A stretch of DNA of 63,371 nt, counting the filler, from Lenisia limosa (lineage: Eukaryota > Protista > Breviatea), in NCBI GenBank assembly GCA_001655205.1. It is 14 parts of 14 records of this genome, joined end to end, with 100 filler letters (N's around TTAATTAATTAA, not from the genome) between each part and the next. Parts side by side here need not be neighbours in the genome. Positions count along the whole stretch, not along the records: positions 12,421 to 22,066 come from LPNZ01006768.1; 13 more parts are not named here. One strand, written 5' to 3'. Positions 548 through 22,279 of this stretch are shown here, in pieces (within the stretch, counting starts at the first letter, position 1; every line of letters starts with the position of its first letter). The position numbers and the translations under genes are program-made. The notes under the pieces are model-generated. The model was not told the DNA's origin. It did not search any database and was given only the letters and a program-made list of their open reading frames with translations.

Positions 548-3500
548 GCGAAGCTATCGTCGCAATGGGCCAAATTAGACATTCCCTCTGAGGGGGAAAC
601 AGCCAGATCCAAGCTGAAGGACAAGTGGGAGGGGGGGGGGGNNNNNNNNNNNNNNNNNNNNNNNNNNNNNNNNNNNNNNNNNNNNNNNNNNNNNNNNNTA
701 TATCTAATGTTTATCTAGATATATATCTGTATATTATATGATATAGATTAACTATTCACCACACCCTCCCCCAGAGATGATTTTGGGCTATTTTTTTTTT
801 CTTTTATTCTCCCAATTTTACCCCCGTCCCCTAGGGTGCGGAAAGGCGTGCCGGATATTTCACGTCGGAAAGCGTACCAGGCCATGACGGGAGGTCTGGA
901 ACTCTATCTCAAGGAACCGCTGAACTACCGTGTGGCCTTGGAGACAGCTTTTAAGCCGGATGGTGGGGGGTATACTTGTTATTAGGGCTTCTCTACGCTC
1001 CCAAAAATGCTCAATTACTCGATAAATCCTCGAAAATTATCGATATTTTACTGGTCTTTTTCGGACCGTAGGGAAGCCCTACTGGTTATACTTTGTTTTT
1101 GGTTCGGAAGGAGGAGGAGGGTTATGTACAATGTTTATACACTTAAAGTCTGTCTGCACAGAGTTGTAAAGCAAATGATTGGGTGAATGAATATTATACT
1201 ATAATCCAATATCTCTTAAAAGCGTGATGGTGTTGACGGTTTCAGCCAGATAACCTTATTTTTTATGGCAATCGAATGCAGCGTCATCCCCATTTCCAGT
1301 CAACTTACCCCTATAGAAGGTGAATGCACTGAAGTCCCCGATACCTTTAATACCCCTCTACCCGACAACAATGGACCCAAAGTTTCCGAATCAGTGAGAG
1401 GTTATTGTTATTACTTCTTCACTTAAACAAAAGGCGGAATTCTTGATAAACCCTCGAGAAATCCTCGATAAACGCTTGATAAATCCTAGATAAATCCTCG
1501 ATAAATATCTGAGATTTTGCTGGTCTTTCGGATTAAAGGCCTAATTCTATAATATCGATATCGATGTTTATATCATATTATAATACTCTAATCCAATATC
1601 TCTTCTAGGCTAAGTGTGAAGGTGTAGACGATTTAGGCTTGATACTACATGTTACCCCCCCCCCCCTCNNNNNNNNNNNNNNNNNNNNNNNNNNNNNNNN
1701 NNNNNNNNNNNNNNNNNNNNNNNNNNNNNNNNNNNTTTTCCGATTTTACGAGTGATGGGATGCGGTGCTGCAGAAGCGACTGGTCTTTTTGTTGTTATCA
1801 ACCCTCGTGTGATGTCAGCCAACAGAGTTGATTTTGGGCTGGTGTTGTTTAATAAATTTAACTCCACCCTCCCGCAGGTTCTCTCATTCCTCACCCCGAC
1901 TGGACGAAGGTGCCTGCATCGTCTGTTGACCGTTTTCGAGAAGACCAACAATTGCCTGTCAAAATCCGCCTCAGTCCCGCATTTGGGTGTGCAGGGAGAG
2001 AGACACACACACAGAGAGAGAAAGAGAGAGAGACAGAGACACACACACAGAGAGAGAGAGAGAGATTTCTGGGGGCTGATCAAATGTCCCAGTGTTCTCC
2101 CCTATTATTAACTATTTTTGTCTCAGCTATTATCTCAATATTATTAATATTTCCAGCTGCCCTCCTCCTCTGCTATCTCAACGAGGTTGAGACCTACTAC
2201 ACGCTCTCATCCATCGCTGAGATGTCTACCGTTGACGGCTGGTATCTTCAGCTTGGTGATGAAAGTAACAGAGTGAGGGGGGCTTTCATTGTTATTTATG
2301 TGTGTGTATGTTGGGTGATATGTGTTGAGAGAGGGTTTTTTCATAAGTCTTCCATTTTAAAGGCTGGCTCGGGCTTGTTTTTGTGTTTGTGTTTTTGTCA
2401 AGTTTTAGCGTTGGTTGTTGCTCATGTTTGTATTGCTTGTTTTTTGTTTGTTTGGAGTTTCAGATTATTCGGTTCGNNNNNNNNNNNNNNNNNNNNNNNN
2501 NNNNNNNNNNNNNNNNNNNNNNNNNNNNNNNNNNNNNNNNNNNNNNNNNNNNNNNNNNNNNNNNNNNNNNNNNNNNNNNNNNNNNNNNNNNNNNNNNNNN
2601 NNNNNNNNNNNNNNNNNNNNAAACTTCCTGACGTCTTTAAACGTAGGAGGAATATGCCTGTTAAATATGCCTGGGTGTCTTGGTTGGATAGGGCTTCCCT
2701 ACAGTCCGAGAAAGACCATTTAAATATCGATATTTATCGAGGATTTATCGAGAGATTCGGTCTTTTTTGGGACCATAGGGAAGCGCTAGTAATATTCCTG
2801 TTAAATATGCCTGTTTATTTTGGTTGGAACGTAAGCGTAATACATATACAGTATATAGCAATGAGAAATAAAAACCAAGGTTGCATGGGTAATAGTATTT
2901 AATCATATCAAGATATTGGTAAAAATGCTTGAATATCCTCATCCATCCAGACCTCACTTTTTTTTTTTTTTCATTTCACCCCCCCCCCCCCCCCCNNNNN
3001 NNNNNNNNNNNNNNNNNNNNNNNNNNNNNNNNNNNNNNNNNNNNNNNNNNNNNNNNNNNNNNNNNNNNNNNNNNNNNNNNNNNNNNNNNNNNNNNNNNNN
3101 NNNNNNNNNNNNNNNNNNNNNNNNNNNNNNNNNNNNNNNNNNNNNNNNNNNNNNNNNNNNNNNNNNNNNNNNNNNNNNNNNNNNNNNNNNNNNNNNNTAG
3201 TTTTCCTGGAAAAATACAGTGAAGTTTTTTTTCAATTTTCCGTTTTACTCCCCCTCCCCAGACCTGTCATCATTGGGAGTGGAAGCCTCGGATTTCGGCA
3301 GTTCCTGGTTTGACGTTCTCTTCCTCCACACCTTCACACCAACCGTTGGCGGGACGGGGGAGGGGTATTGTAATTAGGGCTTCACTTTGGTATAAATCAA
3401 GACTGTTCACCGATAGATCCTCGAAAGCTATCGATATTTTGCCGGTCTTTTCACGGAAGTGAAGCCCTAATAATAATCATCATCATTACAGTAATCTTCA

Positions 3501-3844
3501 CCATCATTATATTAATGCGGGTCTGTGGGGGGTTAGGGCTTCACTTCTGTCCGAGCAATCGAGAAATTCAGTCCTTTTTCGAAACGAAGTGAGGTTCTTG
3601 GTATCATATTATTTTACTGCAAAGGGGGAGGGGGCTATTATCTATCAATAATGTGAATTATGTGGGAGGTGGAGGAGTAATAACTGACATGTGACCGACA
3701 TTTTTTCACCCCCCCCCCTCCTTTTATTTTTTTGCAAATAAAAAACGATGTTATGTGATCTCACGATCCAGGAAGCCTTCAGAGTGCTTGACACCTATCT
3801 CTCCGAGGGAACAAAGGTGCTCTATCGTGTTTCCCTCGCTCTTT
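548..3844 (+). CDS. TBC-domain Rab GAP (TBC1D24-like), multi-exon, partial at both ends
   Basis: Hand-spliced exons give VRKGVPDISRRKAYQAMTGG (about 836-960), VLSFLTPTGRRCLHRLL (1878-), AALLLCYLNEVETYYTL (2158-) and EAFRVLDTYLSEGTKVLYRVSLAL (3771-3844). These match the TBC hallmarks RKGIP..LR..W and R.WD.FL.EG.KVLYRVAL. Boundaries are GT-AG. Confidence 0.8.
983..1081. mobile_element. Family A MITE copy
   Basis: tagggcttctctacg ... cgtagggaagcccta, with a TA duplication. Confidence 0.8.
1749..1877 (+). repeat. Family D dispersed repeat (about 140 bp) ending in a C-run at a 3' splice site
   Basis: gagtgatgggatgcggtgctgcagaagcgactgg...tgtcagccaacagagttgattttggg...aaatttaactccaccctcccgcAG; about 14 full or partial copies. 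Confidence 0.8.
1996..2064. repeat. Compound (GA)n/(CA)n microsatellite
   Basis: Directly visible; intronic in the TBC gene. Confidence 0.9.
3375..3469. mobile_element. Family A MITE copy
   Basis: atTA-gggcttcact ... aagtgaagccc-TAat. Confidence 0.85.
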
Positions 3845-3888
3845 NNNNNNNNNNNNNNNNNNNNNNNNNNNNNNNNNNNNNNNNNNNN

Positions 3889-3900
3889 TTAATTAATTAA
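3889..3900. other. Artificial contig-joining spacer TTAATTAATTAA (first of 13)
   Basis: Identical 12-mer with stops in all six frames, flanked by about 44 N each side, at 3889, 7487, 9590, 11133, 12365, 22111, 27610, 29087, 38626, 55393, 57305, 58738 and 61795. Confidence 0.97.
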
Positions 3901-4055
3901 NNNNNNNNNNNNNNNNNNNNNNNNNNNNNNNNNNNNNNNNNNNNAAGAGATATTGGATTATAGTATAATATTAATTCACCCAACCAATGTTTGTATCCTG
4001 AGATTTTAAATATCAACTAGTTCTATTGTGTATTTTTAAAATAACGTGTACCCAC

Positions 4056-7000
4056 CCCTCCTACCACTATATCCGTGACTGCGGATTCCTCATCAACATC
4101 ATCAGGTTCTTCTTCCAGCGCGCAGCACTGGGGGTAAAGGGAAGATTTATGAAACAAAGAAGAACCCAAAATCAACTGTTGGGGGTGAAATGGAAAATTT
4201 ATCTCTGAGTGGGGGTCAAATTCTCCAAAAATCTCAAACAAGATGTTCAAATTATCCTATTCTTCAAAAAATAGAAACAAGCACATAAGACCTTGAACAC
4301 ACCCCTCCAGAACTAATATCAACCATCTAAAATATGAAAAGATGTCTTACCCCTAGGCTTCACTATGGTTCGAAAAAAAGACTAAATTGCTCGATGAATC
4401 CTCGAAAACTATCGATATTTTCTCAAACCAAGTTATCCTCCCTCCCCCTCTTACACTGCATAAGCATCCCGAGATCATGGCAAAGTCACCGGACCGCAGC
4501 TGGACCTTGACCAGTTCAGAGGGCCGACGGTTGCATTTGACACAAGGCTGGGGGGGGGGGGGNNNNNNNNNNNNNNNNNNNNNNNNNNNNNNNNNNNNNN
4601 NNNNNNNNNNNNNNNNNNNNNNNNNNNNNNNNNNNNNNNNNNNNNNNNNNNNNNNNNNNNNNNNNNNNNNNNNNNNNNNNNNNNNNNNNNNNNNNNNNNN
4701 NNNNNNNNNNNNNNNNNNNNNNNNNNNNNNNNNNNNNNNNNNNNNNNNNNNNNNNNNNNNNNNNNNNNNNNNNNNNNNNNNNNNNNNNNNNNNNNNNNNN
4801 NNNNNNNNNNNNNNNNNNNNNNNNNNNNNNNNNNNNNNNNNNNNNTCCGCCCCTCCCCCCCACATCAACTTTAACCCCATCTCTCACCCACAATCCAAAT
4901 AATTTGAAAATAAACAGCTTGAATAGCTACCAATTTTAGGGTCTCAGTTCAGTTCACAATCCCATTAGTAGCTCCCCCCACATCCGCTTTGGCAGTATCA
5001 TCGGTCACACCATGGCCATGCAGTGAGGTTTCAAAAAGCATGTCGTAATTCTGCTTTTCCTTCATTACGTCCGAAGTGAGGTTGAGGAAAACAGATTGGA
5101 GGGAAGGTGGGGACATACCCTATATGGTAACACAACTGTTTTGAATTGCCTTAAATGATAACGAAACGGATTTGACCTGCCTTATATGGTAATAAAACAG
5201 ATTTAACTTACCTTATGTATATCATAGCTATGTGGTAATAAAACAGTTGACAAGCATTGTTATGAAAACAATGGAATACATTTGCCCTATTTTGCGCATA
5301 CTTTAGGCATTCAATCCCCCCNNNNNNNNNNNNNNNNNNNNNNNNNNNNNNNNNNNNNNNNNNNNNNNNNNNNNNNNNNNNNNNNNNNNNNNNNNNNNNN
5401 NNNNNNNNNNNNNNNNNNNNNNNNNNNNNNNNNNNNNNNNNNNNNNNNNNGATTGAGGCCTTGTCGAGAGTCATAACTACGTTTTCTGGGGAGGGAACAG
5501 ATGTAAATTGGAAATTAATGAATCAAAAATAAGCTGAAAATAACCTATCAGCTGACAACACCGAAGGGTTCAGAACAACAAAACAAACAAAGACCAGGCC
5601 GGTCGCTTCGGCAGTACTGCATCCCATGGTGAAATTGAAGAATATTGGGGATAGGGATATGATACGAACCATAAGCAATAGCAACGCAATCAACCCCTAC
5701 CGGCAGTGTCAAAGTTGATGGTGGCAACTGGAAGCATCTAAAGGTTATTAGGAGAGCCTCACTTCAGTTCAAAAAAAAAAGTGTCATTAGGGCTTCAGTT
5801 ATGGTATCCCTGTTTCCCTAGATTTATAATGTAGCTATATGATATAAATACATTATGTAATTATTTCTCTTCTTTGTTTTTAAACAATTCCACTCACCCT
5901 ATCAATAACACGAAGCACGACGTCCTTTCTAGCCGGGTCCACTCCCAATGTCACGTTGTACTTGCCACCTGTTGGGGAGAGTAAATACGATGAAATGGAG
6001 GGGTGTGTGTTTATGTGAGTGTGTGGATCGAGAGAAAGAAAGTGGTCCAAAGAGGGAAAAAAGTGGGGCCAAATAGACGCACCACATACACAAACAAACA
6101 CATAATTTTGGTACCGTACAATTAATTACTGCAATTAATTTCAATTATCTTTATTTTGGAAAAATAACTATCAATAATTCAAACTCCACCCCGCGCGCAC
6201 CGTGGACGGATTTGAGCTCCAGAGGTGTTCCATGGCACCGCAGTCGCTGTCTCTNNNNNNNNNNNNNNNNNNNNNNNNNNNNNNNNNNNNNNNNNNNNNN
6301 NNNNNNNNNNNNNNNNNNNNNNNNNNNNNNNNNNNNNNNNNNNNGGGTTGATAACAAACAACCAAACAAAGCCCAGGCCAGTTGCTTCATTAGCACCGCT
6401 TGTTCAGAATATCTCCATTAACTGCGGTCAGATACAACAAACAGTCATCATAATCATAACTAGGGCTTCACTTTTTTAGTTCGAAAAAGACTTGAAAAAT
6501 ATTGGTAGTTTAGGATTTATCGATAAACACTATTTAACAAGTGAAGCTCTGATTATATCCCCTGAACTCCCCCAACATGCATCATTGCAACATTGTCGGC
6601 AAGGTTGTCAACTTCCTCCAAGATGTGCGTGGAGTAGAGAATCTGAAGAGTTTTGAAAATCAGTGCTTCCTACTGGACCGATGTTCAGGGAAGTGCCCAT
6701 GTTTCTTACATATAATACCCTCCATAACAACAACCCATATTGTTTAATTGTTAATAGTACCACCAGCTATTACCATTCTTAGCCCCCCTTACGGCGGCAC
6801 CCGCATCACGTCGGCGCAAGATGGCGTTGGCAACGACCTCGCGTACTTTCGGGTCAAGACCACTGTGAAGGTTAGAGTTTTGGAACGGGATAAAGTTCTG
6901 TTGGACTCCGTGTAAGTGTTTTAAGGAAATTAAGTCACAAAATTTGACAATAATGGAAGTTTTATGCCGGACTAGCAGAGAGTTCAAGGGATAAAGAACC

Positions 7001-7324
7001 AATGTTAAAGAATAGCTCAGACACAAACAGACAGAGCAAACAAAATTGACATTAAACTGTCTCAAATATGTAATAATTATCCTAATTATTGTAATGAGTC
7101 CTAACTATTAGATAAAAACGGTAGATTCGCATCGGTTTGAAAAAGTTCTGTCAAGTATCGAAAATTTCCGAGCTTTTATCGATAATTCAGTCTTTTTTCG
7201 AACCGAAGTGAAGCCCAAACAGTAACACACTCCCCTCTCTCCGACCTAGCAGCCTCATCCAGAATGAGTAACTCAGGATCACCGATCAGACAGATCGCAA
7301 TTGACATCCGCCGCCGCATTCCGC
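4056..7324 (-). CDS. ABC transporter, ABCA-like nucleotide-binding domain plus C-terminal region, partial
   Basis: Minus-strand exons: GMRRRMSIAICLIGDPELLILDEAA (signature + Walker B, 7324-7248), GLDPKVREVVANAILRRRDAGAAV, LYSTHILEEVDNLADNVAMMH (H-loop), RLRCHGTPLELKSVHGA, GKYNVTLGVDPARKDVVLRVID. Confidence 0.85.
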
Positions 7325-7542
7325 CTATGAAGGGTGTTATATCGCAATAGGATAACTGTATTTATATACTATGTATTATGTACATGTGTGAAAACGTGTA
7401 ATACATATTCTGCATTTGTACCTGAGAGTTGGCAAGCTCTCTNNNNNNNNNNNNNNNNNNNNNNNNNNNNNNNNNNNNNNNNNNNNTTAATTAATTAANN
7501 NNNNNNNNNNNNNNNNNNNNNNNNNNNNNNNNNNNNNNNNNN

Positions 7543-9308
7543 CACCTCCACGACCTGCTACCAAGTCCTTTGAAAGGGTCACAGCCGCTGAATCGGTATG
7601 CGTCAGGGCCCAGGACCCCCCACTGCAAACTGATGTGACCGTTGCAATCACCTAAACGGGATTTATTCCACCAGAAAAAATTTGACTTGCTCTTGCCAAA
7701 CATAATTCAAGTCAATTATATTTCAAAACAAGGTTTCAAATGGGAATATAATATAGAGATTTGGCTAATATGAGAGAGATTTGTAATCACGAAATCTATT
7801 AAAATGCGATTAATACGACAGGATAACTGGTGTGATAAAATATATAATTAAAAAAAATGTTGTGTAATAATATATCTAAAAAAGCGTTTAGATGTACATA
7901 TGATATAGTATTTATACATATAATGAAAAACAAGGTTGTATCTGGCCGAATCCGCCAAACCATCCGGCTTATAAGAAATATTGGATTATAATATAATATA
8001 AATTCACCCAATTATTTGCCTTACAACTCTGATGCGTGCCTCCCATATCATAAAAGCACCTACAGTGAACTCTATTAATCAAATGCCTTGTAAAATATCG
8101 ATGTTTATCGATGATTTATCGAGAATTCAGTCTATTTTTGGAACAGAAGCTCTTGGAAGGAAATAGTACAAATATTAATGTAACGTAAGCAAACCTGTAA
8201 CGTATTATTAGACAGCTCAGCGACAGTATCTCCAAAGCGATTGCGGGCTACAGCACGGATTTTGATAGTTTTCCCTGCGGTAACTTCTGAAAGTGGCTCA
8301 GAGGTCTGGAGAAGTTACCATGTTCCAAAGAGAAGTAAATAGGGTTTTGTCTGATAACAGATAAACATAAAAGCATACAATTGGTTTTGGAAATATAAAG
8401 CAACCAAAATTAAGACAAGTATTAAGTAAAAGCAGCATCTTCAAAAGAAAAAAAATACAATATACTATACATAATATGTATTGTATATTAACAAGTCCTC
8501 ACATCATATGCGTTAACCCATATCAAGAGCGATTTTGATCATATAACCGATTTTCAAGTCGAAATCACACCACTCACAAGAGCATCCACAATCGAGAACG
8601 TGGTTGAAGACGGAGACAATCCGGCCATAAACATGATGTAGTCGGGAGTAGTGGACTGGATGGGTTAGCAAAGAATCCTTCCTAGAGCTTCGGTTCCAAA
8701 AATAGAATCTCGATAAATCCTCAAAGGCGTTTGATTAGTAGAATTTCACTTTAGGTTCCAAATGACTGACAAAATATCGATATTGAAGATTTATCGAGAA
8801 TTCAGTCTTGTTTTTGGAACCGAAAGTGAAGCCCTAATCATTCCCCTCCTCAAGGGCTTCAATTGGGTTCGTAAAAAGACTAAAGTTTTCAATAAATCCT
8901 CAAAAACTATCGCTATATTACCGGGTTATTTTAAGTTGAAATGAAGCCCCCCATTCTTTGCTCACAATCCCCACTCTTCTAAAGGATGGCAGAGACTATC
9001 TAATAGTGTTTATAAATTCTAAACTCCGTGCAAATGATACAACATTGCCCCAGCGCTCCATGCAATATAACCATGCAATATAAAAATTGTGGTTTATTAT
9101 TATCAGAAAAATAATTCCTACCCCCCACCCCGCGTGTTGTCAGCCAACAGAGTTGATTTTGGGTTTTTTTGTTTGTTTCATAAATTTTCAATTTAACTCC
9201 TCCCTCCCCCGCACATTTGTATACCACCCCCTCAATGGTACGGGGTTAATTGTGCCAAGGCAATCAGCACCATAAGGGCAGTCTTTACACAGTCCAAGTG
9301 AACCATAT
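7543..9308 (-). CDS. Fragment of a large Cys-rich/Ig-like surface protein
   Basis: Exon YGSLGLCKDCPYGADCLGTINPVPLRGWYTN (CPxGAxC...GW motif) and exon VTAGKTIKIRAVARNRFGDT (filamin/Ig-like). Product is inferred only. Confidence 0.4.
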
Positions 9309-9645
9309 CTAAAGAGGATTAAACAGACGGTCTTGGCTATTTCGAGTAAATAATCTTGGTAATTGTTTTGCACTGTATTGCTAAACACACCAACTGTACA
9401 GTATATCATCATAAAATTAGGATTTCACTTCGGTACGGAAATATATCGAGTAATTCAGTCTATTTTCGAACCGAAGTGAAGCCCTAGGTATGAAAATATA
9501 GCTAACATTAGCTGTACTCCACCCCCCCCCCACTGGCCAATCGGGNNNNNNNNNNNNNNNNNNNNNNNNNNNNNNNNNNNNNNNNNNNNTTAATTAATTA
9601 ANNNNNNNNNNNNNNNNNNNNNNNNNNNNNNNNNNNNNNNNNNNN

Positions 9646-10918
9646 TGGGACAGCGTTGAAGAAGTCATCGGTATGTATAAGTACAGCTTCACTTCGTTTC
9701 GAAAAATGACTGAATTTCTCGATAAATCATCGATGACTATCGATATTTTACCTGTCTTTTTTCGGGCAATAGGGACGCCAATCTGGTGACTCATCATTGA
9801 GTTGTCACAATTTACAGATTTAGAGTCTTTTTGTTTTGGATTCCATACTATTATGAGAGCGAATTTAGCAGAAAATGTGAAACGTAGAGATACATATCAG
9901 ACTAAGAATTCCAAAAATAAGATAATAATACCGCTAGTAACTTCTTGATATTTACTTGATAAATATTGGGTCTGAATATTTGGGTCAATATGAAATTCTG
10001 CCGTTTCCAACAATACAGAAGCACCCTGAGATGTCGCCCTTCAAAGACATACTGCACAAGCACAAAATCCAAGAGATTCCATCTTTATCTTCGGGTGAAT
10101 GGGTGTTTGTTCCAATGAAAATTATCATAGTATACTCTCTGATGGAGAATAGGGTATTTAGTTACCCATTGCTATCTTTATCAATAATTTCCAAAGTAAC
10201 TCAGCACGTAGACAATTACAACGACTCCGAAAACCCCCGGGTACAGGGAACTCAGATCCCGCGGTACGGCACTGCTTCAAAAGAGTGGGCGGGTGATTTT
10301 GGCAGTTTATTTGGGTCCCATGCATTGCTCATTTTATTGGTTTCATTTCACTTTTCCTCATTGAGCAGTCACCCCAAAACGAAGACCAAGCTAAAGAAGC
10401 TCTTGACGTCTCCTCGCAGGTCGGCGTTTTTGTTACAACAAACAATGTTTAACTTGTGTATACTCGTTTTCAATTTGTTATATTGTAACATATCACGTGT
10501 TTATATTGCATTTCAATCCAATATCTCCTTTAAGCATGATGGTATGAACGGCTTCGGCAGATACATCCTTGTTTTATTTTGCATCTCTATCAAAAAAAGC
10601 ATATTGTAATGTATCAGACTCAACTGGATATGATTGTTGTTGAAATGGTGTAATAGTAGTCCTCGTTTCGGCTGATGTTTAAATGGTTTAATAGTAGTCC
10701 TTATTTCGTTTGATGTTTAAATGGTATAATACTAGTCCTCATTTCTTCTGATATTTAAATGGTGTAATACCTCATTTTGTCTGATATTTTAATACTCCGG
10801 CTCATTTCGTCTGATGTTGGATGTCGTGTCACCTCCTTAGACTTCAACCTCAAAACCAAAACATCCCCAAAATGCCCCCGATGGTTGGTTTAAACAATGG
10901 GTTCTCTACCCGGTGGTG
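9646..10918 (+). CDS. Uncharacterised protein, 3' part
   Basis: Phase-consistent exons KHPEMSPFKDILHKHKIQEIPSLSS / TQHVDNYNDSENPRVQGTQIPRYGTASK / HPKTKTKLKKLLTSPR / LQPQNQNIPKMPPMVGLNNGFSTRW*. No family recognised. Confidence 0.45.
10643..10820. repeat. Intronic minisatellite, about 38-bp unit x4-5
   Basis: Unit like atggtgtaatagtagtcctcgtttcggctgatgtttaa, repeated and degenerating towards the 3' end. Confidence 0.8.
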
Positions 10919-10947
10919 AAACACATTACTATTTCTCGTCAACTATA

Positions 10948-11028
10948 CAGTAACTGGGATAAGGCTTGACCGATTTGCAAAGTGATTATTTCTCAAGGAA
11001 AGTTGGTCAAGACTTATCCCGGTCACTG
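10948..11028. mobile_element. Family C MITE copy
   Basis: TA-cagtaactgggataagg ... cttatcccggtcactg-TA. Confidence 0.85.
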
Positions 11029-11424
11029 TATATATATACATACATACATGTATATATATAATAGTATATATGCTATGTATCTCTCTCCNNNNNNNNNNNN
11101 NNNNNNNNNNNNNNNNNNNNNNNNNNNNNNNNTTAATTAATTAANNNNNNNNNNNNNNNNNNNNNNNNNNNNNNNNNNNNNNNNNNNNGAACAATGGAGA
11201 CTTGAGGCTAAAGATGGTCAGATAGGACTAAGATATTATAATTTGTTGAGAACGAACTATACTCATTAAAAAAAGAACAATTATACACTATGTATGCACA
11301 TCATATATACTATTACATATTATATTATACTTAGGGCTTTATTACGGTCCGAAAAAGATCGAAGGATATATTGAGAAATTGTGTGTTAGTGATGAGTCAT
11401 CATCCAATTTAGCGAGGATGTTTC

Positions 11425-11860
11425 AGGTGTTGTATTCTTGACCATGCTCACCAAACCCCAAAACCCCCACCAAAGACAACAAATTGATGGTCTCCTTTAA
11501 CAAGCTTCACCGGGGGGTCGGAAGAGGCGAATGGCACCTTTGAGATAAAGAGAGAGACGGGGTGTACAATTGGAAAATTTATTGAACAAAAAAATAACAC
11601 AAAAAAGTCATACTCCCCTTCGTTTCGAAAAAAAGACTGAATTTCTCGATAAATCCTCGAAAACTATCGATATTTTACCAGACTTTTCGAAGCGAAGTGA
11701 ACCCCTCCGCCATCCCCAAATAAGCAATAATATCTCCATATTTCACCGCCAACTCCCTACCCAATTCGGGGAGTTCACCTCAAAGTACACGGCCTTGACG
11801 CCGACAAAAGCAGGGTTTTCACCCGTCTCATCTGTGCCGCACGTCAACAGCGATCCGTAG
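11425..11860 (-). CDS. Uncharacterised protein, 3' exons
   Basis: Phase-consistent exons YGSLLTCGTDETGENPAFVGVKAVYFEVNSPNW / VPFASSDPPVKLVKGDHQFVVF / EYNT*. Confidence 0.35.
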
Positions 11861-11880
11861 TCTAAGAAGTTAGGGAATGA

Positions 11881-12131
11881 AAGGGTCCGATCAATTAATT
11901 GAAAAATTAAGTGACATTTTTACGAGAACCCCAATTCATGTAATATATAAACATAACTTAATTAAATAGGAAAAAGCAAATAGCAAGAAATGGCTTAGAC
12001 CGATAGACCAAAAGCATAAGATTGAAATGGTACTCTGAATTTAGGAATAATTAGTACGGCAGTAATGAATAGGAAAACGCCTCATCCCAATTTTATCATT
12101 TCCTCAAAAGAAATGAATTGCACGGAGCCCT
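11881..12131. mobile_element. Family F TIR element (TA-GGGCTCCGTGCAATTAATTG ends), degenerate
   Basis: Right end gaattgcacggagccc-TA at about 12115-12132; degenerate left end gggtccgatcaattaattg; the same terminus recurs at about 28800-28880, 43648 and 54022. Confidence 0.5.
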
Positions 12132-12510
12132 AAATTTAACATAATTCAGTACTGTTGGAGTGTTGCGCTATTCTAAGAGACTACTAGATACTCAATAAAA
12201 ATGTTCAAATTGTGTTTGGGATTTACAATTTTAATCCTGAACCCACTTCAAATTTATACCCCCCACCCCACGCACCACCCAGGATAACGGTTATCCCATT
12301 CTCCGCAGTGAACACTTCGGNNNNNNNNNNNNNNNNNNNNNNNNNNNNNNNNNNNNNNNNNNNNTTAATTAATTAANNNNNNNNNNNNNNNNNNNNNNNN
12401 NNNNNNNNNNNNNNNNNNNNACTTTACTTGGGGAGGGGGGGGGATCAAGGTTTTTTGAAAGATAATATTATTTTCTTTCATTGATGAGCCCCCCAATTTA
12501 CCGTTTTTAG

Positions 12511-15500
12511 TGAAGATCCGCGAATAGCTCTCTTGGAGGATTATAGCGAAGAAAGTAACGAGTGAGAGGAAGGATTTTAGTCAACAATATTCAATCTCTT
12601 TCTGCAGTGCCAAATGATTTGTACATTTGCGCTTTATTACAAGTAAATTGAAATTCAAATTAAAAATAGTAATCAAAATTACTATTACAGGAGGAATATA
12701 ATTATTACCCCGAAATCTCATTCTTTAGTAACAGCGAATGGGAGTCTCACTCTTCTGAAGGTAGGAGCAAGGGTGCTGCTGGTCAAACCTTTTTGTCCTT
12801 TGTTTCTTATGAACTACGAGTCTATTTTGGTATATTATTATGTTTTTTGTCGTAATCCCCATTCTGTGTTATCAATATTGAGCCGTCAACTGGATCATTT
12901 ATCAATAGTGTATTGTTTCAATCCACTTTGAATTGGCTTGTTGATGATCGCAAAGTTTGTCATCACTGACTCTCAATTTAAAATTGTCGAACATGAAATG
13001 ACCACTCAGAAAGCGAAGATGAAAACGAGGAGGAAGAAAAAGAGGGTGACCTTTTCGCGTCTCCAAAGATCCAGCGAATCGAGCAACAGGTGAAAGAAAC
13101 CAGAGCCATCATGCATGAGAACATNNNNNNNNNNNNNNNNNNNNNNNNNNNNNNNNNNNNNNNNNNNNNNNNNNNNNNNNNNNNNNNNNNNNNNNNNNNN
13201 NNNNNNNNNNNNNNNNATGACTTTTAAGAACGGGGGATAACAAAACAATGAATGCATTAAATAATATAACCTGTGTCCATATTCATTTGCTGTATTATAT
13301 GATATACACTGACCGCGATAAGTCCTGACACGATTTACTCCAGATAAAGCGCATTATCCGTGTCAGGATTTTTCGTGGTCAGTATATATTTCATTTGCTG
13401 TATTATATATCATATGTAATACATATATACAACATTTCATATGCCACTGAGTAATTTAGTTAGGGGGGGGGGGGTGATGGGATACTGAGGGGGACCACAT
13501 TTGACCAATCTAGGTGATGGAAAGAGGCGAAGCGTTAGATATGTTGGATGAGAAGGCCATCTGTCTGGAAAAGTGGGTGACTGGCTGGCTTTTGATTGTT
13601 GTGGTATTTATTATTGTTCACATTTTTGTTAGCAAGGTTCTCATAGTTATTCCTATCACTTTTGTTTTCAATTTGGCTTCTACATATAACTAATACATTT
13701 GTCACATCATCATACATGCTTGTATGATCCAGTTTTAAGCAGGCGATCAATCTTACCATTTAGTTCAGCTCAGCAGTTTAACATGAAAGCTGCCTCAATG
13801 AAAAAGAAAGGTGAGCTAACGGTCGGTTGCCTTTTAGCAAAGGTTCATTTAGGGCCAAAAAATAGACGATCTTGACATTTTACTGCTATTTTTGTTATGG
13901 ATTTTAATTTGTTGCAGGAGGAGGGTTCTCTCGCCAAAGGAAGTTCAAACCTGAACCACCTATGAGTATGTCTTTGATTTAAAAACAGTATTTTGAAGGG
14001 TTATCCACGTTATTATTAACATGGGAACTAGTAGAGAAACACAGCTATGTAGGGTATATATAGCAATAAGAAATAAAAAACAAGGTTGTATCTGGCCGAA
14101 GCCTTCCACACCATCACGCTAATAAGAGATATTGGATTAGAGTATAATATTAATTCACCCAATCATTTGTCTTGCAACTCTGTGTACACAGCTTTCTGCG
14201 TGCTCTCCAGCATAGGTATTCTGTGACATATTGGGATAGTTCTTCATTTCAATCCACGGTGTCTTGAATCGGAATATCACACTGCCAGAAGAAGCCAACG
14301 CTTATGACGACAGTGATGCAAAACCCTCGTTACCCGATGACAGCAAGGTGGGAGGGGTATGGCTTCTAAAATTCATAAAATTTGTCAAATATTTTTATTG
14401 CTATATAATACCAGAATACGTATCATATGCAAAATAGAAAATGTTTATCAATTGGTACATCAAGGAGAAAATAAATAAATATTGCGTTTTCTGTGCAATA
14501 TGGATATCATACGGATTTTCACCCAATTCCTTGTTAAATGACCCTCAGCCATATCAGGAGCCGGTTCGTACCGGCAAAATGAAGGACGAAGGTTTGTGGT
14601 GAGAGTAGACACTGGAAGTTAATAGAGGGTTTTGTGTTATGTATTCCTAACCTTCATCTCACAATGCTCCCCGTATTGAGGTCTGCATATATTTACAGAC
14701 TTGAACACTTTTTTCGCGTCAGCTATTCGTTCTCTCATGGATAACAATTCTAGCGCCTTCAAAGCCCCAAAGGAAGCGAAAGTCAAAAAAACATGTGGAT
14801 AGCGATGATGATGATCGTGTGAGGGCCGAACTGACGGAATCGACTTTCGCTAACACCGGCCTGGGCTTTGTTTGTTTTGTTGTTGTCAACCCATGTGTGT
14901 TGTCAGCCAACANNNNNNNNNNNNNNNNNNNNNNNNNNNNNNNNNNNNNNNNNNNNNNNNNNNNNNNNNNNNNNNNNNNNNNNNNNNNNNNNNNNNNNNN
15001 NNNNNNNNTTGGAACCGAAAGTGCAGCTCTAGTTAGTAGCATCAATTAACACCGACAGTCGATCTCCAGGCCCTGGCTGACGCTTCGCATTGCAATGTCG
15101 GCAAGAGCGGACCAATTGAGGTGGGTCCGCTTTGGGTTTGACTGTTTTTGTGTCCGCTTATGTGAAGGATAGAAGACCATTCAGCTAAGATTACTGCGAA
15201 TCTCTCTCTTGGTTAATCTCAAATTTGAAACCATGTATTATCATCAGATATAACATCATATACAGAATTGGGGAAGTCTTTTCATTTTTCTGGTTATTTT
15301 CTTTGACCTAATGATATCACCATGACTTCCCAATTACTTTTACCACTCAGTACATTCCCACCGTCTTCGATAACTACTCTGCGAATGTTATTGTCAACGG
15401 CTGTCCCATGTCGGCATCGTACAACGAACTCAGTAGCCAGGTAGGCACATGGTGAGGGCAGATCGAATGATATTGCGAGGCAAAAGGATTCATGCCGCCG

Positions 15501-17575
15501 GGATGAACTGCCTCTACCGTTTTTTTAGGTTGCTACTTGTCTTCCCTTTGTGTAGACAATATCTGTTACTAGGAGTCCTTTGGAATATGTGTTGAATCCC
15601 AGTATGGGGTTTTAAGGTGTGTTGATGCCTTGTATATCCTATACAGAGTCTAGTAGAAGATGTGTATTGCAGATTAGTGGTAAGTCTTGACCATCAACCT
15701 CTGCTGCATTATCGCTTCTGGTCTAACTCGTGACAGTATATGGAAACCAGGCTCCTCCCCATCATTGTCAGCTGCAACCAAGTCAACATGCTCCTCTTCA
15801 ACCCCTGGGTATGTCAGAATCCTCTTTTGCAAAAGAATAATCTTAATTGGCGCTTCACTTTCTCTTTTGCAAATGATGTAATATCATTGGTACCGTATGG
15901 ATGGAACGTCTTCGGTATAATATGATATCTGATATAATATATTGATAAATAGTATGCATTTCATACTATAATATCATATCATATGATGTGTATTTAGAGA
16001 ATGTCATGTGTCTAATTCCCGAAAGTAAAGCTCCAGTTTTGACCCTTTACAGGTCCGGGAGTCCTTTGAGTTCCTCGACACGTTTATTGCGGCATNNNNN
16101 NNNNNNNNNNNNNNNNNNNNNNNNNNNNNNNNNNNNNNNNNNNNNNNNNNNNNNNNNNNNNNNNNNNNNNNNNNNNNNNNNNNNNNNNNNNNNGGTTGAA
16201 TAATAATTCTTCTATTTATACCTTAGGAGCAAGTTAGCTGCATAAAAGATGAAGCAGTCAAGGCTGACCTGTTTAGCGTGAATGTCTTCCGCAATGTCAC
16301 CCCAGCCTGTGAGGATATCCCAAAAACGGAGTTCCCTCTTGGAGTCGTTGTTGCAACCCAGGTATACCGTGAGGGCGGATTGATAGGTGGCGTCTTTTGA
16401 GATCAATATGGGATGTGTTGATTATAATATGATATGTATTTCTATATTTCTCATTATTTTGTTCAATAATGATTCTACTCAGCTCACTAATGTGTTTGTT
16501 TATCATGTCTTTCAATTTGGGTAACAAAAGACTGATCTCCTAAGATTGATCGCCATCCTTCCACTCGGCTTGTGACTGAAGAAGAGGTATGTAAGGGAAG
16601 GACGGAGCATTAACATATTAATCGTAGTACTGATTGACCCATTTGTATAGTTTATATTTACCCTTTACTTCAATAACGCACCAATCCAGGGCAGGATCTG
16701 GGCCAAAGCGCATGGGATGCCCTACGTCGAGATCTCAACCTTTGACGGTATAAACACCCCAGTACCCTTCGACATCATGCACCAAATTGCCTTCAAGCAC
16801 TTAGGGTGGGGGCTAGATCAGAATCATAATTTGAGTTTTTGAAGTTGAAGGCAGATTGGCCTTATTATGAAAATTTAGTGGCCTAAGATGATGATATTGC
16901 TTGTAATATGGAAATAGATTTTTCCTTGACGCTTCCAGCCCCAAGAAGCTGAAGAAGCTGAAGAAAGGACAGTTCCATTCCCACGCTTCTGGCTTCTTCA
17001 GCGTGCGATTTGGCGTCGGTGGAATGGACGGAAGCGGCAAGACGCATCTCATAATGAGCTACACTTGTGGTCCAATGCCAGCCTATGGTTTGGAAGGGCT
17101 TCATAGCAAATGGGCTCCAATTGTCTTGGTGCTAGAGGAGATAGGTACTCCGAGGTAGTCTTAAAAGCCACTTTCCGAGTGACATTTTTTAACTTTTTTA
17201 AATGCTGTTTTGTCAACTTCTGTCAGAAGATACTACCAAGCATCATCCCATTCATTCGTAATTTGTGTTTTTGCGATCCCATTCATTCGTAATTTGTGTT
17301 TTTGCGTCGAACTATTTCAGAATCCTTTTAAAATTTAGGATGATTAAAATTTTGTGAAAGGGGGAGGGGCTACATGGATTTGATTTGTAAGTCATTTTTC
17401 TTCTAACCTGTCAGATATGAAGCCCGAGATCCCGGATCCTGGAGTGCTCTGGAAGGCTCCAAAGGACCCTCATGGCAACCCGCCCCCTGGTACCATCCAG
17501 GAGATTGGCAAAGGAAAGTCCTTCGGCTACCCCTGTAGGAGGACTGATTACGACAAGGAGTTGCTTGATGAATAA
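12511..17575 (+). CDS. R-SNARE coiled coil (no TM helix) fused to degenerate Rho/Ras-like GTPase sequence; 5' partial
   Basis: SNARE exons: KIQRIEQQVKETRAIMHENI / VMERGEALDMLDEKAICLE / NSAQQFNMKAASMKKK. GTPase exons: YIPTVFDNYSANVIVNG (15351-15440), MLLFNPW/VRESFEFL, GVVVATQ/IDRHPSTRLVTEEE/GRIWAKAHGMPYVEIS, and VRFGVGGMDGSGKTHLIMSYT (16939-17087). Splice phases are consistent wherever there is no N gap. Confidence 0.65.
14055..14182 (+). repeat. Family B dispersed repeat (about 130 bp, no TIRs), best copy
   Basis: tagcaataagaaataaaaaacaaggttgtatctggccgaagcc...aagagatattggattagagtataatattaattcacccaatcatttg..caactctg. Copies at about 1158(-), 1585(-), 3945, 7921, 10505(-), 25915(-), 28965 and 41355(-). 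Confidence 0.85.
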
Positions 17576-17682
17576 AGTACACCACTCTCCAACTTGTACA
17601 AACTCTTTACACCACCACACACAATATTAATTAGCGGAGATGATGCAATAGTTTTGTCTTTCTTCTTACTTGCCCTTTACAG

Positions 17683-18374
17683 TCCGATTGATGCCGCCCT
17701 ACGAAATGCTTTACGCCGTTACCGAATCTTGCCAAAATTCCGATGGCATTGAGTGGGAAAGGGGGGAACCATTCCGACAAGAGAAGCACGAAAACTTTAT
17801 ATATAGTGTCTGCTCATAAAATTCTGAAATATTTCTTCTTAGTTGCGTGTATGTGACCTGGTTTAGAGAGGGTATCAAAAGAAGGTTCCTCAGTGCTGCA
17901 TTCGAGGAGAATGACCCCGAGCTGCCCTTGTCTAAAGTGGACCTGGAGTGAGAGGAAGGCCTGCTGTTTATGCTGTTAGTACAAAGTATATTAACTGGGG
18001 TAGAAATTGCTTTTGGTGTGTACCATTATGCTCAAATTTTGATGCTTCTTCTTTTTGGTATTGCTTTATTATAATATTACATTATCCTGATAACCGTGTA
18101 GGAGTGCTTTCATCGAGACCGACAGCGACTCACTTATGTGCTTGGATGATAGCAACGCGGCTCTCATACCCACACCCAAGAGTAGGCAACAGGGGGTATA
18201 TGGCTTATGAGTAAAAGGAGAGGGGGTCATTGTTGACAAATCCCTTGAAATGACTATTCCCTTCACAACGCAGACACCACCCCCAGAGTGTCTGTTCGTC
18301 TTACAGCAGGCCGCGCGCTGATTCTTTCGTCGTCAGATTCTTGTCGTGGCTCAATTTCAATTGATTGGAGCGAG
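17683..18374 (+). CDS. Further exons, possibly continuing the preceding gene as a second degenerate GTPase domain
   Basis: Exons FRLMPPYEMLYAVTESCQNSDGI / EGIKRRFLSAAFEENDPELPLSKVDL / SAFIETDSDS. They are in phase if a donor near 17534 is used instead of the stop at 17575. SKVD and FIET weakly resemble G4 and G5. Confidence 0.35.
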
Positions 18375-18706
18375 GTTGGTGGTGTTGATCTTTACTTATG
18401 TCATTATTAATATTATTCTTTCTTTGACTTTTTTATGAGAGACATTAAATGAGTACAAGTTAAGGTTTGCTTTTCCCTTTTTTATGTCACTCTTTTCTCC
18501 ATTTGTTATCCTTTTTTATATTCTGAGTTTTAATTTTTTCGTTCATTGGTTTTATATAACGAACAATCTCAACAATTATCCATTCGTATTGACCTTGTTT
18601 CTATTTTTCCATCAGTATGTTATTATATATCATAAAAAAAATATATTAAAAACAAAAAAAAAACTGACTGCACATTCTCTTGAGGTTCAAAGAGCTTGGT
18701 AGAATC

Positions 18707-20510
18707 ATTTTATACGCCCGTCTTCGTATCATATACCAAGAGCTCACTGGAAACATTGTATATCGAGGGACTTAAAAATTGATGTGACACCCATAATAGT
18801 TTTCCCTCAATAATAAGAGACAGAGCAACGCGTACAAAAATGAAAACAATGTATTGAAGATGCAGTAAAATGAACAAGCTAGTTCACCTGAGCTGCTCGT
18901 CTGGAACACACTGTACAATTTTGGCCGCAAAGTTGGTGTGTTCACAGGAACATTTTCCTAAGAAGATATAAAACAGAAAAAACAAAATCTATTCAAAAAG
19001 GCAATTCTAAAATGCTTGGAATGTGCCATTGACATTACCAATGAGGCTGACAGGAGATGTCTCAATGTCATCAGTCCACGAGGGATAACATTTGGCACAC
19101 ATGTGCACTGCTGTTCTGTTTACGAGGAAATGGTATGTAACCACAGCTATCCTAAGAATTAGCTTGGTTCCATTAAGCAAGTTTTACCTTAGAAACAGAG
19201 TTCCCTTTAGCCGATGTTAGTCTTTGGATAAGAGTGCCAGGGCGTACTTAGCAAGGCCCTAGCAAAGGTGAGCTGAGATACATCGTCACACCTAAGAAGA
19301 AAATAACAAACGAGTTCAGTCCTCAAATTTGGTGTATCTTGAAATATCAAAAGGAGAGAGCTATATTGTATATCATAAAACCACCCAGCTACTTACGTTA
19401 AACAGCAAGTGAAGGCAAATCTGCTTACAACAAATTATTTAGAACAACTTTCAAGCCTGAAGGGCTTTTGATCAGCCCGGTCCTTCAGTATCAGCCGCGC
19501 TCTTGATACCGTCACTGCCGCATCTTATTCTACCAAAGCAGACTTCCCACTTGTTACGATTCTGAATAATGTGTATCCTCTCTTGACTACGGGGTTACGC
19601 TTTCCTGCCAAGAAGTGCATGGACTAAAATTTAACTGTTTGTATCGAGAGGTCAGTTTCCTCAACAATTTTGCGTTATAATAGAATCGGCAGTTCGCTAA
19701 AATATAAAATATTAAAATAATGCCACAAGGCATTAAACGGTTGTTCTGCAGGCGACATATACAGAGAGTGTTTTTGCTCCATTGGGAGACACGAGGTCTA
19801 CAACCTTGCCTCCTAAGGCGCCTTTCTTGGACTTTGAAGCATCTCTGACACAGAATAAGACCTAAAAAAAATTACATTAACAAGAATGATGCTAATTAAA
19901 ATTCACAATGTATCTCTGGATAAGCATCTGCGACATGGATGATGTTGGTACATCTGCCCTGACACTACAAACATACGGACACTTGGCCTCAACCAACCAG
20001 ATACCTTTGGGCGAGAGAACCAAGAGGTCCGGAGACGCCCCGATCCGTGACTGGGTGTCACCAACAAAGCTTCTCACAGTTAACAAGCCGACTGTCAGCA
20101 CCAGGAATGTCTTCGTAGTGTGGATCATCCTGTCGAATTATTCAAAATAAATCCCCAAACAAAAACGTGACAAATGAGGGAAATAATATCTCGGTGACTC
20201 ATCTTGCAGCGGAAATCAAATCCGCTCTTTTTTGAATCGAAGAAAGCTCTTGTTATGCAATTTACTTCTTGATTTTCCTTTGTCGTTTTTCTCTCTCAAC
20301 TATCGTGAATGTTGTCTTTGTATTTCTCCATGTTCACCAATAAACGATCTGTAAAACAAAGAGATGGATAACTTTACGTAACTAACACCATGCTATCTAG
20401 ATACATACATCTACATTTAATGTAGAATGACTTATCCCTTCACGTTTCGGACCGTCTGACTCATCCAGGAAGGACAACTCAGCTGCACTCCGACAACCGC
20501 CTCAATAGAC
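18707..20510 (-). CDS. YqaJ/lambda-exonuclease-like PD-(D/E)xK nuclease, multi-exon; boundaries approximate
   Basis: Exon 19920-20110 encodes RIGASPDLLVLSPKGIWLVEAKCPY...SQMLIQRY, matching the GASPDG...EIKCPY...QxQ motif of YqaJ-type nucleases. Flanking exons are not recognisable. Confidence 0.55.
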
Positions 20511-22279
20511 CTTTTCACTGGGTGTTGGGAGTACGGTCGAAGATGCGGAGTGGTAGGATATTGTCAAATACTGACGGTTTTGTTTTCATAAGAGTAATCA
20601 ATTTTAAAGCGGGGAATAACCACAAAAGGTTTGGAGTTGTACTATTTACTTCAGAAATCTTTCTCACCTCTTCTTTTTGTATTCTTAACATGGGCGAAGG
20701 TCTGCGGCCGGCTTCAGCCAACGTCTTCCCTCATTTTGAGTTTATCTTCTCAAGGTTGGGTTCATATTCCCTGAAAAGGGGGGTTATATAGCATGATGAA
20801 CTGTGCTATGATAAGTAATGCTCAGCAGTGATGATATAATATATACTATACAACATACAAAAAGCGAGGATCACATCAGGAATATTTATTCTAACCATGG
20901 TTGAGGATGTTTTGTTTCACCCCCCCCCCCCCNNNNNNNNNNNNNNNNNNNNNNNNNNNNNNNNNNNNNNNNNNNNNNNNNNNNNNNNNNNNNNNNNNCT
21001 TGGTCCAGATTGGGTCATGCACAATGCTCTATCTCACTCTCCACGCCGCTGTGATCATGAAGATAGCTAAAATCCGTGGGGCTGAGAGTGACCCTAATGT
21101 TGTGTTTTTACTCAACATCGAAATGCATGGCTTTTTAATCCGAAGTAAATCCCTGTTTCTCAGTGAAGAGCCTGGTTATGTTCCGTGTTTTGGGCGTCCT
21201 ACGCTCGCAAAAAATACGGAATTGTTCGATAAATATCGTAATTTTAAGACGGTCTTTTTTGGGACCATAGCAAGGGCTATGATAAATCTCCATTTTCGAT
21301 TCCAAAGGCGGATTCTCATTATTACCGATAATGTTCATGGTTGTATTGACCATACTGAGGGAGTGTGTTCGTCCTGAATACTTCCCATTAACTCCTTAGG
21401 TCGACCAAGGCTTTGCCTGCATAAGGTTCCAGAAGGCTTGGATGCTAAAGGTTGGTCGCATAGAATAGATCACAGGTCACTTTTATCAACATGTCACGAT
21501 TTTTTTTTTTCTTTTCTGAAGTATGGCATATCATATATTCTCATTTAGTATTTCGAATCTTAATGGATTTTAGATCGAGAATCCCTTATGAAAGAGTTTA
21601 GGATACCCTACTGTAAGAGGAGTGCTCACTTTTGTTGCAAAATACCATTCTAATGGGTAATACATAGGGCTTCACTTCGGTTCCAATAATACCAGTAAAA
21701 TATCGATAGTTTACGAGGATTTTTCGAGAAATTCAGTCTTTTTTTGAATCGAAATGAAGCCGAAAGCATACATACTATGATATATACGCGGGAAATTCAC
21801 CACTTTTTGGGGATGGAAAGCCAAAAGTAGCATGTTGTCATGGTGTAGGAGATAAATAGCTACAATATCTTGCCAGTATTTTCAGACTGAATTATGTATT
21901 TATTCACTAAACATTTAGCGGTTTACGGAGTTGAGAGTCACAGCTGCCGCCTGCTTAGGGATGCATTACGTAGGTCACGGACTGTTTAATTATGCCCCCC
22001 CTCCCCCAGACCTATCCGATACTCAATTATTAAGTCAACAGAGTTGATTCAGTTTCATATTATCTCNNNNNNNNNNNNNNNNNNNNNNNNNNNNNNNNNN
22101 NNNNNNNNNNTTAATTAATTAANNNNNNNNNNNNNNNNNNNNNNNNNNNNNNNNNNNNNNNNNNNNTTTTTAACAGTATGAAAACCCACTCACAATATAC
22201 CCACACTCCCCTCCCCCCCACGTTTTTTTTTCCTTTTTACAACCAAAAGTAAAGTATTTAAATTCAATCTACCACCCCC

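Follow-up and report, generated by a model that had tools for sequence, protein, structure and literature searches.

A candidate fusion of an anchorless R-SNARE motif with a Rac-derived region in Lenisia limosa

The locus and its gene model

The window analysed here is a stretch of 63,371 nucleotides (nt) from Lenisia limosa (Breviatea; GenBank assembly GCA_001655205.1), joined from 14 parts of 14 records, and the region studied is its piece 12421-22066 (LPNZ01006768.1). Within 12511-17575, together with upstream contig sequence, we modelled an intron-rich gene whose predicted product carries an R-SNARE motif without a membrane anchor, followed by a region derived from the small GTPase Rac. 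The piece is eukaryotic DNA: its exons are short (42-206 nt), and its introns, of ~100-390 nt, are AT-rich and have GT-AG ends. It is represented in two public runs of one study. The first (X1) contains 94-99% of the sampled words of the piece and is DNA-like, since introns are included among these words; the second (X2) is a poly(A) RNA library.

Through a 52-residue open reading frame (ORF) of the last exon we reached an ENA contig of 14.8 kb without any N (L001), which shows 100% identity to the piece on every gap flank. Contig and window are probably from the same sample, and so the gaps are resolved but without independent confirmation. Gap 1 (13125-13216) has a true length of 73 nt, in which TGATAAA (7 nt) ends the SNARE exon and is followed by a GT donor and intron; the filled frame reads ..IMHENIDKVMERGE.., and a Logan DNA contig of X1 bridges the gap with the same 73 letters. 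Gap 2 (14913-15008) measures 106 nt, all intron, and gap 3 (16096-16193) 109 nt, with 7 exon bases, a GT donor and a run of 23 G (G23). All four N gaps of the piece sit on G or C homopolymer runs (L001 5717-5729, 7524-7535, 8678-8700 and 13504-13516), which explains their presence in the window. Eleven such runs of 12-23 nt occur in the 14.8 kb of L001, one per ~1-2 kb.

The gene model comprises 18 exons and 494 codons, with 0 stops in its frame versus 21 and 37 in the other two, and extends from a possible ATG at L001 4630, outside the piece, to the TAA at 17573-17575. Its features, all on the + strand, are given below with splice-site scores from position weight matrices (PWM) and the supporting evidence.

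L001 4630-4680 (outside the piece), +: predicted exon with the possible ATG
12691-12760, +: predicted upstream coding exon, acidic N-terminal; donor PWM 9.9 (best in phase), acceptor 7.6; no RNA support
13010-13124 (+7 nt in gap 1), +: acidic stretch and R-SNARE layers -7 to -2; RNA record 8 covers 13036-13124; L001
13514-13572, +: exon of the zero-layer arginine (VMERGEALD...); length arithmetic of record 8, PF00957 26-43, VAMP2 alignment
13764-13810, +: last R-SNARE exon, layers +5 to +8, ending KKK; record 8, PF00957, VAMP2 alignment
13918-13965, +: linker exon 1; arithmetic and depth of record 8, acceptor PWM 7.6
14289-14347, +: linker exon 2; alignment of record 8
14549-14591, +: linker exon 3; depth in bin 14421-14620, unlisted ends of records 8 and 12, AG/GT sites, in phase
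14754-14816, +: linker exon 4, basic then acidic; record 12 aligns at 14752-14816
15059-15120 (start possibly 15071), +: junction exon, P-loop relic then GPIE; depth arithmetic, 48-51 nt of record 12 and 22-24 nt of record 13
15351-15440, +: switch I, beta2, beta3 and degenerate G3; record 13, Rac1 32-53
15737-15808, +: equivalent of switch II, alpha2 and beta4; record 13, gapless Rac1 alignment
16053-16095 (+7 nt in gap 3), +: alpha3 equivalent; record 13, L001, donor PWM 6.5
16238-16361 (predicted start), +: predicted exon with insert, beta5 and degenerate G4 (TQ|ID); acceptor PWM 3.9, coding score 22 bits over 16227-16361; no RNA support
16545-16586, +: predicted exon (IDRHPSTRLVTEEE); in phase, GC content 0.50 versus 0.33-0.36 in introns, within the PF00071 match; no RNA support
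16690-16805, +: predicted exon with alpha4, beta6, G5 (STF) and alpha5; PF00071 108-154, coding score 10 bits; no RNA support
16939-17144, +: predicted exon with polybasic stretch, Rho-type beta1, P-loop GMDGSGKT and alpha1; Cdc42 5-52 match, in phase on both sides; no RNA support
17415-17575, +: predicted last exon, a 53-residue tail ending in TAA; coding score 26.8 bits, in phase
17571-17576, +: AATAAA overlapping the TAA stop, read from the sequence

The AATAAA is possibly a polyadenylation signal with a very short 3' untranslated region, or else a coincidence. No known family was found for the last-exon tail. A further exon at 12511-12554 (..RIALLEDYSEE), which may resemble the N-terminus of VAMP4, was dropped, its donor being weak and that of 12691-12760 far better and in phase.

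An anchorless R-SNARE motif and its spliced link to Rac-like exons

Spliced together, 13010-13124 with the 7 nt of gap 1, 13514-13572 and 13764-13810 encode a 61-residue motif that matches the Pfam family Synaptobrevin (PF00957) at 53.9 bits, with an expectation value (E) of 1.6e-14 and a curated cut-off of 26.4, over profile positions 4-60 of 89. The single SNARE exons each give weak Synaptobrevin matches, yet at consecutive profile positions (3-22; 26-43). Gapless alignments were obtained with Nyv1, VAMP4 and VAMP2 (E 1.5e-7 to 8e-7). Layers were assigned from the VAMP2 alignment with the standard, established VAMP2 numbering. The zero-layer arginine is kept (R of VMERGE opposite VAMP2 R56), and layers -7 to +8 read I,I,V,T,M,N,V,R,L,L,A,L,A,F,A,M; all 16 are suitably occupied, 12 of them by the residue found in VAMP2.

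The anchor part of PF00957 (positions 61-89) has no match in the spliced motif, and there is no juxtamembrane WW at the end of the coil. In the product read from the piece (13010 on) no hydrophobic stretch was found, the top 19-residue Kyte-Doolittle mean being 1.12. The coil ends in ..MKKK and is followed by GGGFSRQRK.., the RNA being spliced from 13810 to 13918 into a charged linker. A hidden anchor could in principle be reached through an alternative acceptor at 13866 (13866-13951), which gives ..KKKDDLDILLLFLLWILICCRRR.. and then a stop, resembling a tail anchor. This candidate was rejected because its acceptor scores -4.0 versus 7.6 for the one used, its 13-residue run derives from a pyrimidine tract, and the form is absent from the RNA.

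Three contigs of the poly(A) library carry the gene from the SNARE exons into the Rac-like ones. Record 8 (326 nt) aligns at 13036-13124 and 14289-14347. Between these two stretches it has 161 unlisted letters, exactly the sum 7+59+47+48 nt of the gap-1 bases and exons 13514-13572, 13764-13810 and 13918-13965; the depths in the bins of those exons (1.0, 0.77 and 0.85) agree with 3.4x exon lengths, and a further 17 letters extend into the next exon. Record 12 (164 nt) aligns at 14752-14816, preceded by 48 letters (the 43-nt exon 14549-14591 plus 5) and followed by 51. Record 13 (233 nt) begins with 22-24 letters and continues with 15349-15437, 15734-15807 and 47 nt of the exon that starts at 16053, 4 nt of which lie inside gap 3. 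In bin 15021-15220 the depth of 1.27 x 200 gives 254, which equals 7.2 x 22 + 2 x 48; therefore records 12 and 13 both have their free ends on a single in-phase exon, 15059 (or 15071)-15120. This exon has at most 62 nt, and the mutual overlap of the two ends is shorter than one assembler word. Overall, the spliced RNA chain from SNARE through linker to Rac-like exons spans 13036 to 16095 plus 4 nt.

The reading frame is open along this chain. Over the 228 codons with RNA support there is no stop in the SNARE frame, versus 7 and 19 in the other frames, and the 71-codon linker has 0, versus 2 and 8. From composition, the chance of 71 stop-free codons is 0.028, before the 1-in-3 chance of meeting the Rac frame. 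Given spliced contigs and an open frame throughout, we take the fusion as established for the RNA, and consider it highly probable that one fused reading frame leads from the SNARE through the first Rac-like half.

These results agree with a preliminary description of the locus, which had placed a synaptobrevin-type coil with a retained zero-layer arginine in exons 13010-13810, had seen no membrane anchor, and had proposed the PF00957 profile search whose outcome is given above. It had also asked whether one transcript covers 13010-15440, and the poly(A) contigs do link SNARE and Rac-like exons over 13036-16095; between 13810 and 15351, where it had considered that two genes might separate, there is neither a stop nor a transcript end, and the gap at 14913-15008 is intronic. 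The in-phase charged linker that it described stands, with two corrections based on the RNA: exons start at 14289 and 14754, not upstream, and there is an extra linker exon at 15059-15120.

The Rac-like halves and a second Rho piece

Exon 15351-15440 has a match in Rac1 residues 32-53 (E 5e-6), and once spliced, the first half gives a gapless alignment to Rac1 28-91 (E 2e-8). The switch I/beta2 segment YIPTVFDNYSANV is identical to Rac1 32-44 at 13 of 13 residues, including the conserved threonine (Rac T35). The G3 motif is degenerate, with ELSSQ opposite DTAGQ, and retains the catalytic Q61. What precedes the equivalent of Rac1 residue 28 is only ..ADASHCNVGKS, fused straight to GPIE (Rac1 28-31). 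To judge from its sequence, the NVGKS stretch is a P-loop relic with an insertion, helix alpha1 is missing, and the domain would have no working P-loop. A Pfam search of this first half gave no match.

No RNA contig was found over 16221-18400, and exons 16238-17575 are for this reason predictions. The exons predicted to carry G4 to G5 match the Ras profile PF00071 at positions 108-154 with 17.0 bits, versus a cut-off of 21.6 (E 0.0047). Within this match G4 reads TQID for [NT]KxD, the lysine being replaced and the aspartate kept, and G5 reads STF at the place aligned to SA[KL]. The product ends in ..KELLDE, with no C-terminal CAAX box. The 3' exons have a GC content of 0.50-0.54, versus 0.24-0.36 in the flanking introns, and with a coding model trained on the RNA-supported exons alone the predicted frame scores positive in 5 of 5 and is the top frame for 4, exon 16545-16586 being a near-tie with the next frame. 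All are phase-compatible, and the Ras fold goes on in the correct order. At gap 3 the best donor (PWM 6.5) leaves two bases over and joins in frame to the acceptor at 16238 (PWM 3.9, the highest nearby); this splice, from 16095+7 to 16238, is the weakest joint of the gene model. We regard it as probable that the 3' half is part of the same reading frame, and the rest of the Ras fold and an extra P-loop segment are accordingly shown in the model as predicted parts of the same protein.

The protein might instead end in or near gap 3, at about residue 280, and consist of the R-SNARE, the linker and a Rac-like fragment equivalent to residues 28-100. Exons 16238-17575 would then be untranslated, belong to another unit, or be relics. 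The RNA contigs do stop at 16095+4, with none downstream. Furthermore, read-through past the gap-3 donor meets a TAA right after the G23 run, and the acceptor at 16227, which has a better pyrimidine tract, is out of frame and leads to a stop after 6 codons. However, it is the top-scoring donor and the best nearby acceptor that are in phase, five further exons follow in phase and stop-free with exon-like GC and the coding scores given above, and they carry on the Ras fold in order (profile 108-154). An early end thus seems unlikely.

Exon 16939-17144 lies in phase after alpha5 and the polybasic PKKLKKLKK, and encodes ..VRFGVGGMDGSGKTHLIMSYT.. with an intact GxxxxGKT (GMDGSGKT). It aligns to Cdc42 5-52 without gaps over 48 residues. 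In shuffling tests against this one target, 0 of 20000 shuffles reach the score, and 29 of 20000 do so with the P-loop core masked in both sequences; the likeness therefore reaches beta1 and alpha1. The Atlas features of the exon point to Ras/Roc N-terminal fragment clusters (0.89), a lead only. The switch I equivalent of this second Rho piece is degenerate. A tblastn search of the model against the whole 14.8-kb contig returned no further Rho-like exons; the rest of the second copy is therefore not downstream. The first copy has all but G1 and alpha1 and the second just G1 and alpha1, and such complementary pieces would form the pattern expected of a tandem duplication trimmed at both ends.

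The preliminary description had recognised the Rac-like switch I and the degenerate G3 (ELSSQ) and G4 (TQID, which lies inside the weak Ras match), and in this it was right. Its account of the domain missed the absent alpha1 and the reduction of G1 to a relic, and its list of features lacked the intact Rho-type P-loop and alpha1 after G5 (16939-17144). It also did not note that the 3' half is without RNA support and that the frame across gap 3 depends on the acceptor.

Relatives were searched for with parts of the protein (the C-terminal exon, the junction peptide and two 3' exons), each alone. With the C-terminal P-loop exon, an exhaustive search of 1.84 billion representatives yielded no homologue. 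The 7 matches to this exon are bacterial FG-GAP repeat proteins and represent repeat noise, not kinship: GVGGMDGSGK resembles the repeat GDxDGDGK, which occurs several times per protein. More fully, GVGGMDGSGKTHLIM mimics the FG-GAP core GDxDGDGKxDhhW, and summed over 4-5 repeats this gives E values of 2.6e-6 to 8.7e-4. Such mimicry is a trap for short P-loop queries. A word-indexed search with the 86-residue junction peptide found no match. Of two scans of JGI metagenomes with the two longest 3' exons, one was empty and the other returned one contig, which is unrelated (59% GC, sharing just DPHGNPPPG). In the literature searched, of which coverage is partial, no description of a fusion between an R-SNARE and a Rho-like region was found.

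The surroundings of the gene deserve a few remarks. The 52-residue ORF of the last exon (17417-17572) has a letter-for-letter copy in the ESM Atlas and in the ENA metagenome assembly ERZ3820729 (NODE_424, 25 kb); DNA of this eukaryote has therefore also been assembled as 'metagenome' and gene-called with prokaryote-style ORFs. The 5 kb upstream of the gene (L001 1-5002) contain long ORF-like stretches with prokaryote-style gene calls, which gave no Pfam hits. Within the introns, the elements at 14063-14203 and 14858-14912 are of very high copy number, with summed word depths in X1 of ~1.4e5 and 8.3e4 relative to ~35 in single-copy flanks; the intron stretch 13221-13420 reaches ~1.5e3. Many chimeric joints and loose ends pile up at the high-copy elements, of which 14858-14912 adjoins gap 2. 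They look like short mobile elements, similar to miniature inverted-repeat transposable elements.

Proposed role, alternatives and known systems

The best explanation of these data, to which we assign a probability of about 0.6, is a single intron-rich gene encoding an anchorless R-SNARE fused to a Rac-derived region, with a proposed role as a regulator. The product would be a cytosolic protein of ~494 residues, with an acidic N-terminus, the R-SNARE motif, a charged, proline-containing linker of ~70 residues and the Rac-derived domain, followed by a polybasic stretch, a partial second Rho N-terminal segment (GxxxxGKT and alpha1) and a 53-residue tail.

Soluble proteins with an R-SNARE motif, such as tomosyn and amisyn, are a known brake on SNARE assembly. 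By analogy, we tentatively put forward a mechanism for the Lenisia protein. Its SNARE coil would zipper with Q-SNAREs and, without an anchor, could not draw membranes together; the protein might compete for or regulate Q-SNARE acceptor complexes, and SNARE assembly, without driving fusion. Alternatively, it might work in the manner of Ykt6, an R-SNARE with peripheral attachment. For the Rac-like module we propose a pseudoGTPase, in which the conserved switch I face and the polybasic stretch may provide localisation or partner binding, not GTP switching.

Several observations weigh against a single fused gene of this kind. The joints between records 8 and 12 and between 12 and 13 were deduced from length and depth arithmetic and do not lie within one contig, and RNA depth is low (2-7). 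Both 5' exons are predicted only, and RNA support stops at 16095 (+4 nt), ahead of the joint where both the out-of-frame acceptor 16227 and read-through past the donor lead to an early stop. The two Rac-like halves, each scored separately, miss the Pfam cut-off for Ras. The DNA sources are probably one sample and hence not independent. Finally, neither the C-terminal exon nor the junction peptide found a relative in the searches described, so that any conservation of the gene, and with it any selection, is hypothetical.

Some of these observations would suit a lineage-specific chimera of VAMP, Rac and second Rac N-terminal fragments, transcribed at a low level and with no selected function, either decaying or very young. 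The catalytic motifs are degenerate, the two Rho pieces are incomplete, no relatives were found in the searches and RNA depth is low. Moreover, repeats of very high copy number abound in the introns and suggest that mobile DNA able to shuffle exons is active here. However, all 16 SNARE layers are intact in a gapless VAMP alignment, and the Rac spacing is exact over 64 residues although most residues have diverged, indicating an old divergence without insertions, deletions or stops. Splice sites are canonical throughout, and the 494 codons are stop-free where the other frames hold 21 and 37 stops. We consider such a chimera improbable; if the gene were one, it would merely illustrate exon shuffling in a repeat-rich genome.

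Two neighbouring genes, VAMP-like and Rac-like, could also be joined solely in rare read-through transcripts, their main products being an ordinary VAMP with its anchor and, separately, a Rac-like protein. In conjoined transcripts the terminal and first exons are typically skipped. Such skipping, together with the low RNA depth and the acceptor at 13866, from which a short hydrophobic tail and a stop would follow, could be taken in favour of this scenario. Yet five dedicated linker exons are spliced in frame between both parts, and the junction exon carries the G1 relic in frame, so that no Rac first exon has been skipped. No anchor-coding exon was found, and the form using 13866, with its poor acceptor and its run from a pyrimidine tract, is in no RNA contig. 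Two genes are thus a decidedly unlikely arrangement. That assembly or scaffolding joined unrelated loci across N gaps or G-runs is hardly credible: three gaps do lie within the finding, each on a G or C homopolymer run, and the DNA sources are probably one sample, but spliced RNA contigs cross gaps 1 and 2, the Logan DNA contig bridges gap 1 identically, and across gap 3 the Ras fold continues in order on the same strand.

Returning to the single fused gene, a complete VAMP-type coil combined with a Rac-derived module whose effector face is intact would extend the small group of anchorless R-SNAREs by a new architecture. Rho GTPases mark sites of exocytosis and actin remodelling, and the protein would be a compact link of both systems. 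A more speculative reading, which we regard as doubtful, is that the Rac-like module represents a circular permutation in the making, in which tandem Rho domains were fused and then trimmed. The first copy would have lost beta1, the P-loop and alpha1, and the second kept just those; the C-terminal GMDGSGKT and alpha1 might then fold back into the truncated core to give a working nucleotide-binding domain of order G2-G3-G4-G5-G1. Topologically the permutation is allowed: alpha5 ends on the side of the Ras fold on which beta1 starts, and the cut is placed in the loop from alpha1 to switch I. We know of no small GTPase of this order. If the reading were true, a permuted domain tied to an R-SNARE without an anchor could make the availability of the SNARE depend on nucleotide state or on the binding of Rac effectors, and complementary Rho fragments that fold together would offer a rare natural example of an intermediate in permutation by duplication.

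Among known systems, the motif itself is closest to the brevin R-SNAREs (VAMP2, VAMP4, Nyv1/Snc), with which it shares a complete gapless motif, the zero-layer arginine, VAMP-like layers and a short acidic N-terminus, the model having no longin domain. Unlike these, the Lenisia protein has no WW and no transmembrane anchor, and ~378 more residues follow the motif. Tomosyn (STXBP5) and amisyn (STXBP6) are soluble regulators with an R-SNARE motif and no membrane anchor, and resemble it in bearing an R-SNARE coil on an anchorless protein. They form fusion-incompetent complexes with Q-SNAREs of the syntaxin and SNAP-25 types. In both, the coil lies at the very C-terminal end, behind a WD40 domain in tomosyn and a PH-like one in amisyn, whereas here it is near the N-terminus, at residues ~60-116 of 494 in the model (~58 residues before it coming from predicted 5' exons), and precedes a Rac-like module. 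The best matches of the motif also place it with the VAMPs and not with tomosyn. Soluble R-SNARE regulators of this kind are covered by a review (PMC8377282). Ykt6 is likewise an R-SNARE without a transmembrane domain that needs other means to reach membranes, but it has a longin domain and a CCAIM lipidation box, where the present model has no longin and ends in ..KELLDE; its match to the motif is weak (E 0.003).

With Rac1/Rac3 the protein shares the identical 13-residue switch I/beta2, the gapless alignment to Rac1 28-91, and the order beta5-G4-alpha4-beta6-G5-alpha5 followed by a polybasic stretch. It differs in the deleted alpha1, the P-loop broken by an insertion, the degenerate G3, G4 and G5, the missing CAAX, ~25 extra residues between alpha3 and beta5, and a domain embedded in a larger protein. 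In circularly permuted GTPases of the YlqF/RsgA type the order is G4-G5-G1-G2-G3. As in these, an intact G1 follows G5 in the primary sequence; here, however, the order is (relic G1)-G2-G3-G4-G5-G1, and the domain is Rho, not TRAFAC translation-factor-like. PseudoGTPases and the atypical Rho domains of multidomain proteins such as RhoBTB (PMC4931677) offer another parallel, in that a divergent Rho-derived domain forms part of a larger protein with a link to vesicle traffic. RhoBTB carries BTB domains, and its switch I is flanked by insertions on either side (PMC4931677). The Lenisia protein has a canonical Rac switch I and no BTB domains. Kinship with RhoBTB, considered for the Q in G4 and the FD after G5, is not supported, since no insertions flank switch I here. 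By its sequence features, the protein would thus fall outside the canonical VAMPs (no anchor), tomosyn and amisyn (coil placed elsewhere, neither WD40 nor PH-like domain) and the functional Rho GTPases (place of G1, G3, G4, G5 and CAAX), and is most aptly seen as a novel form within the anchorless R-SNARE proteins and the pseudoGTPases.

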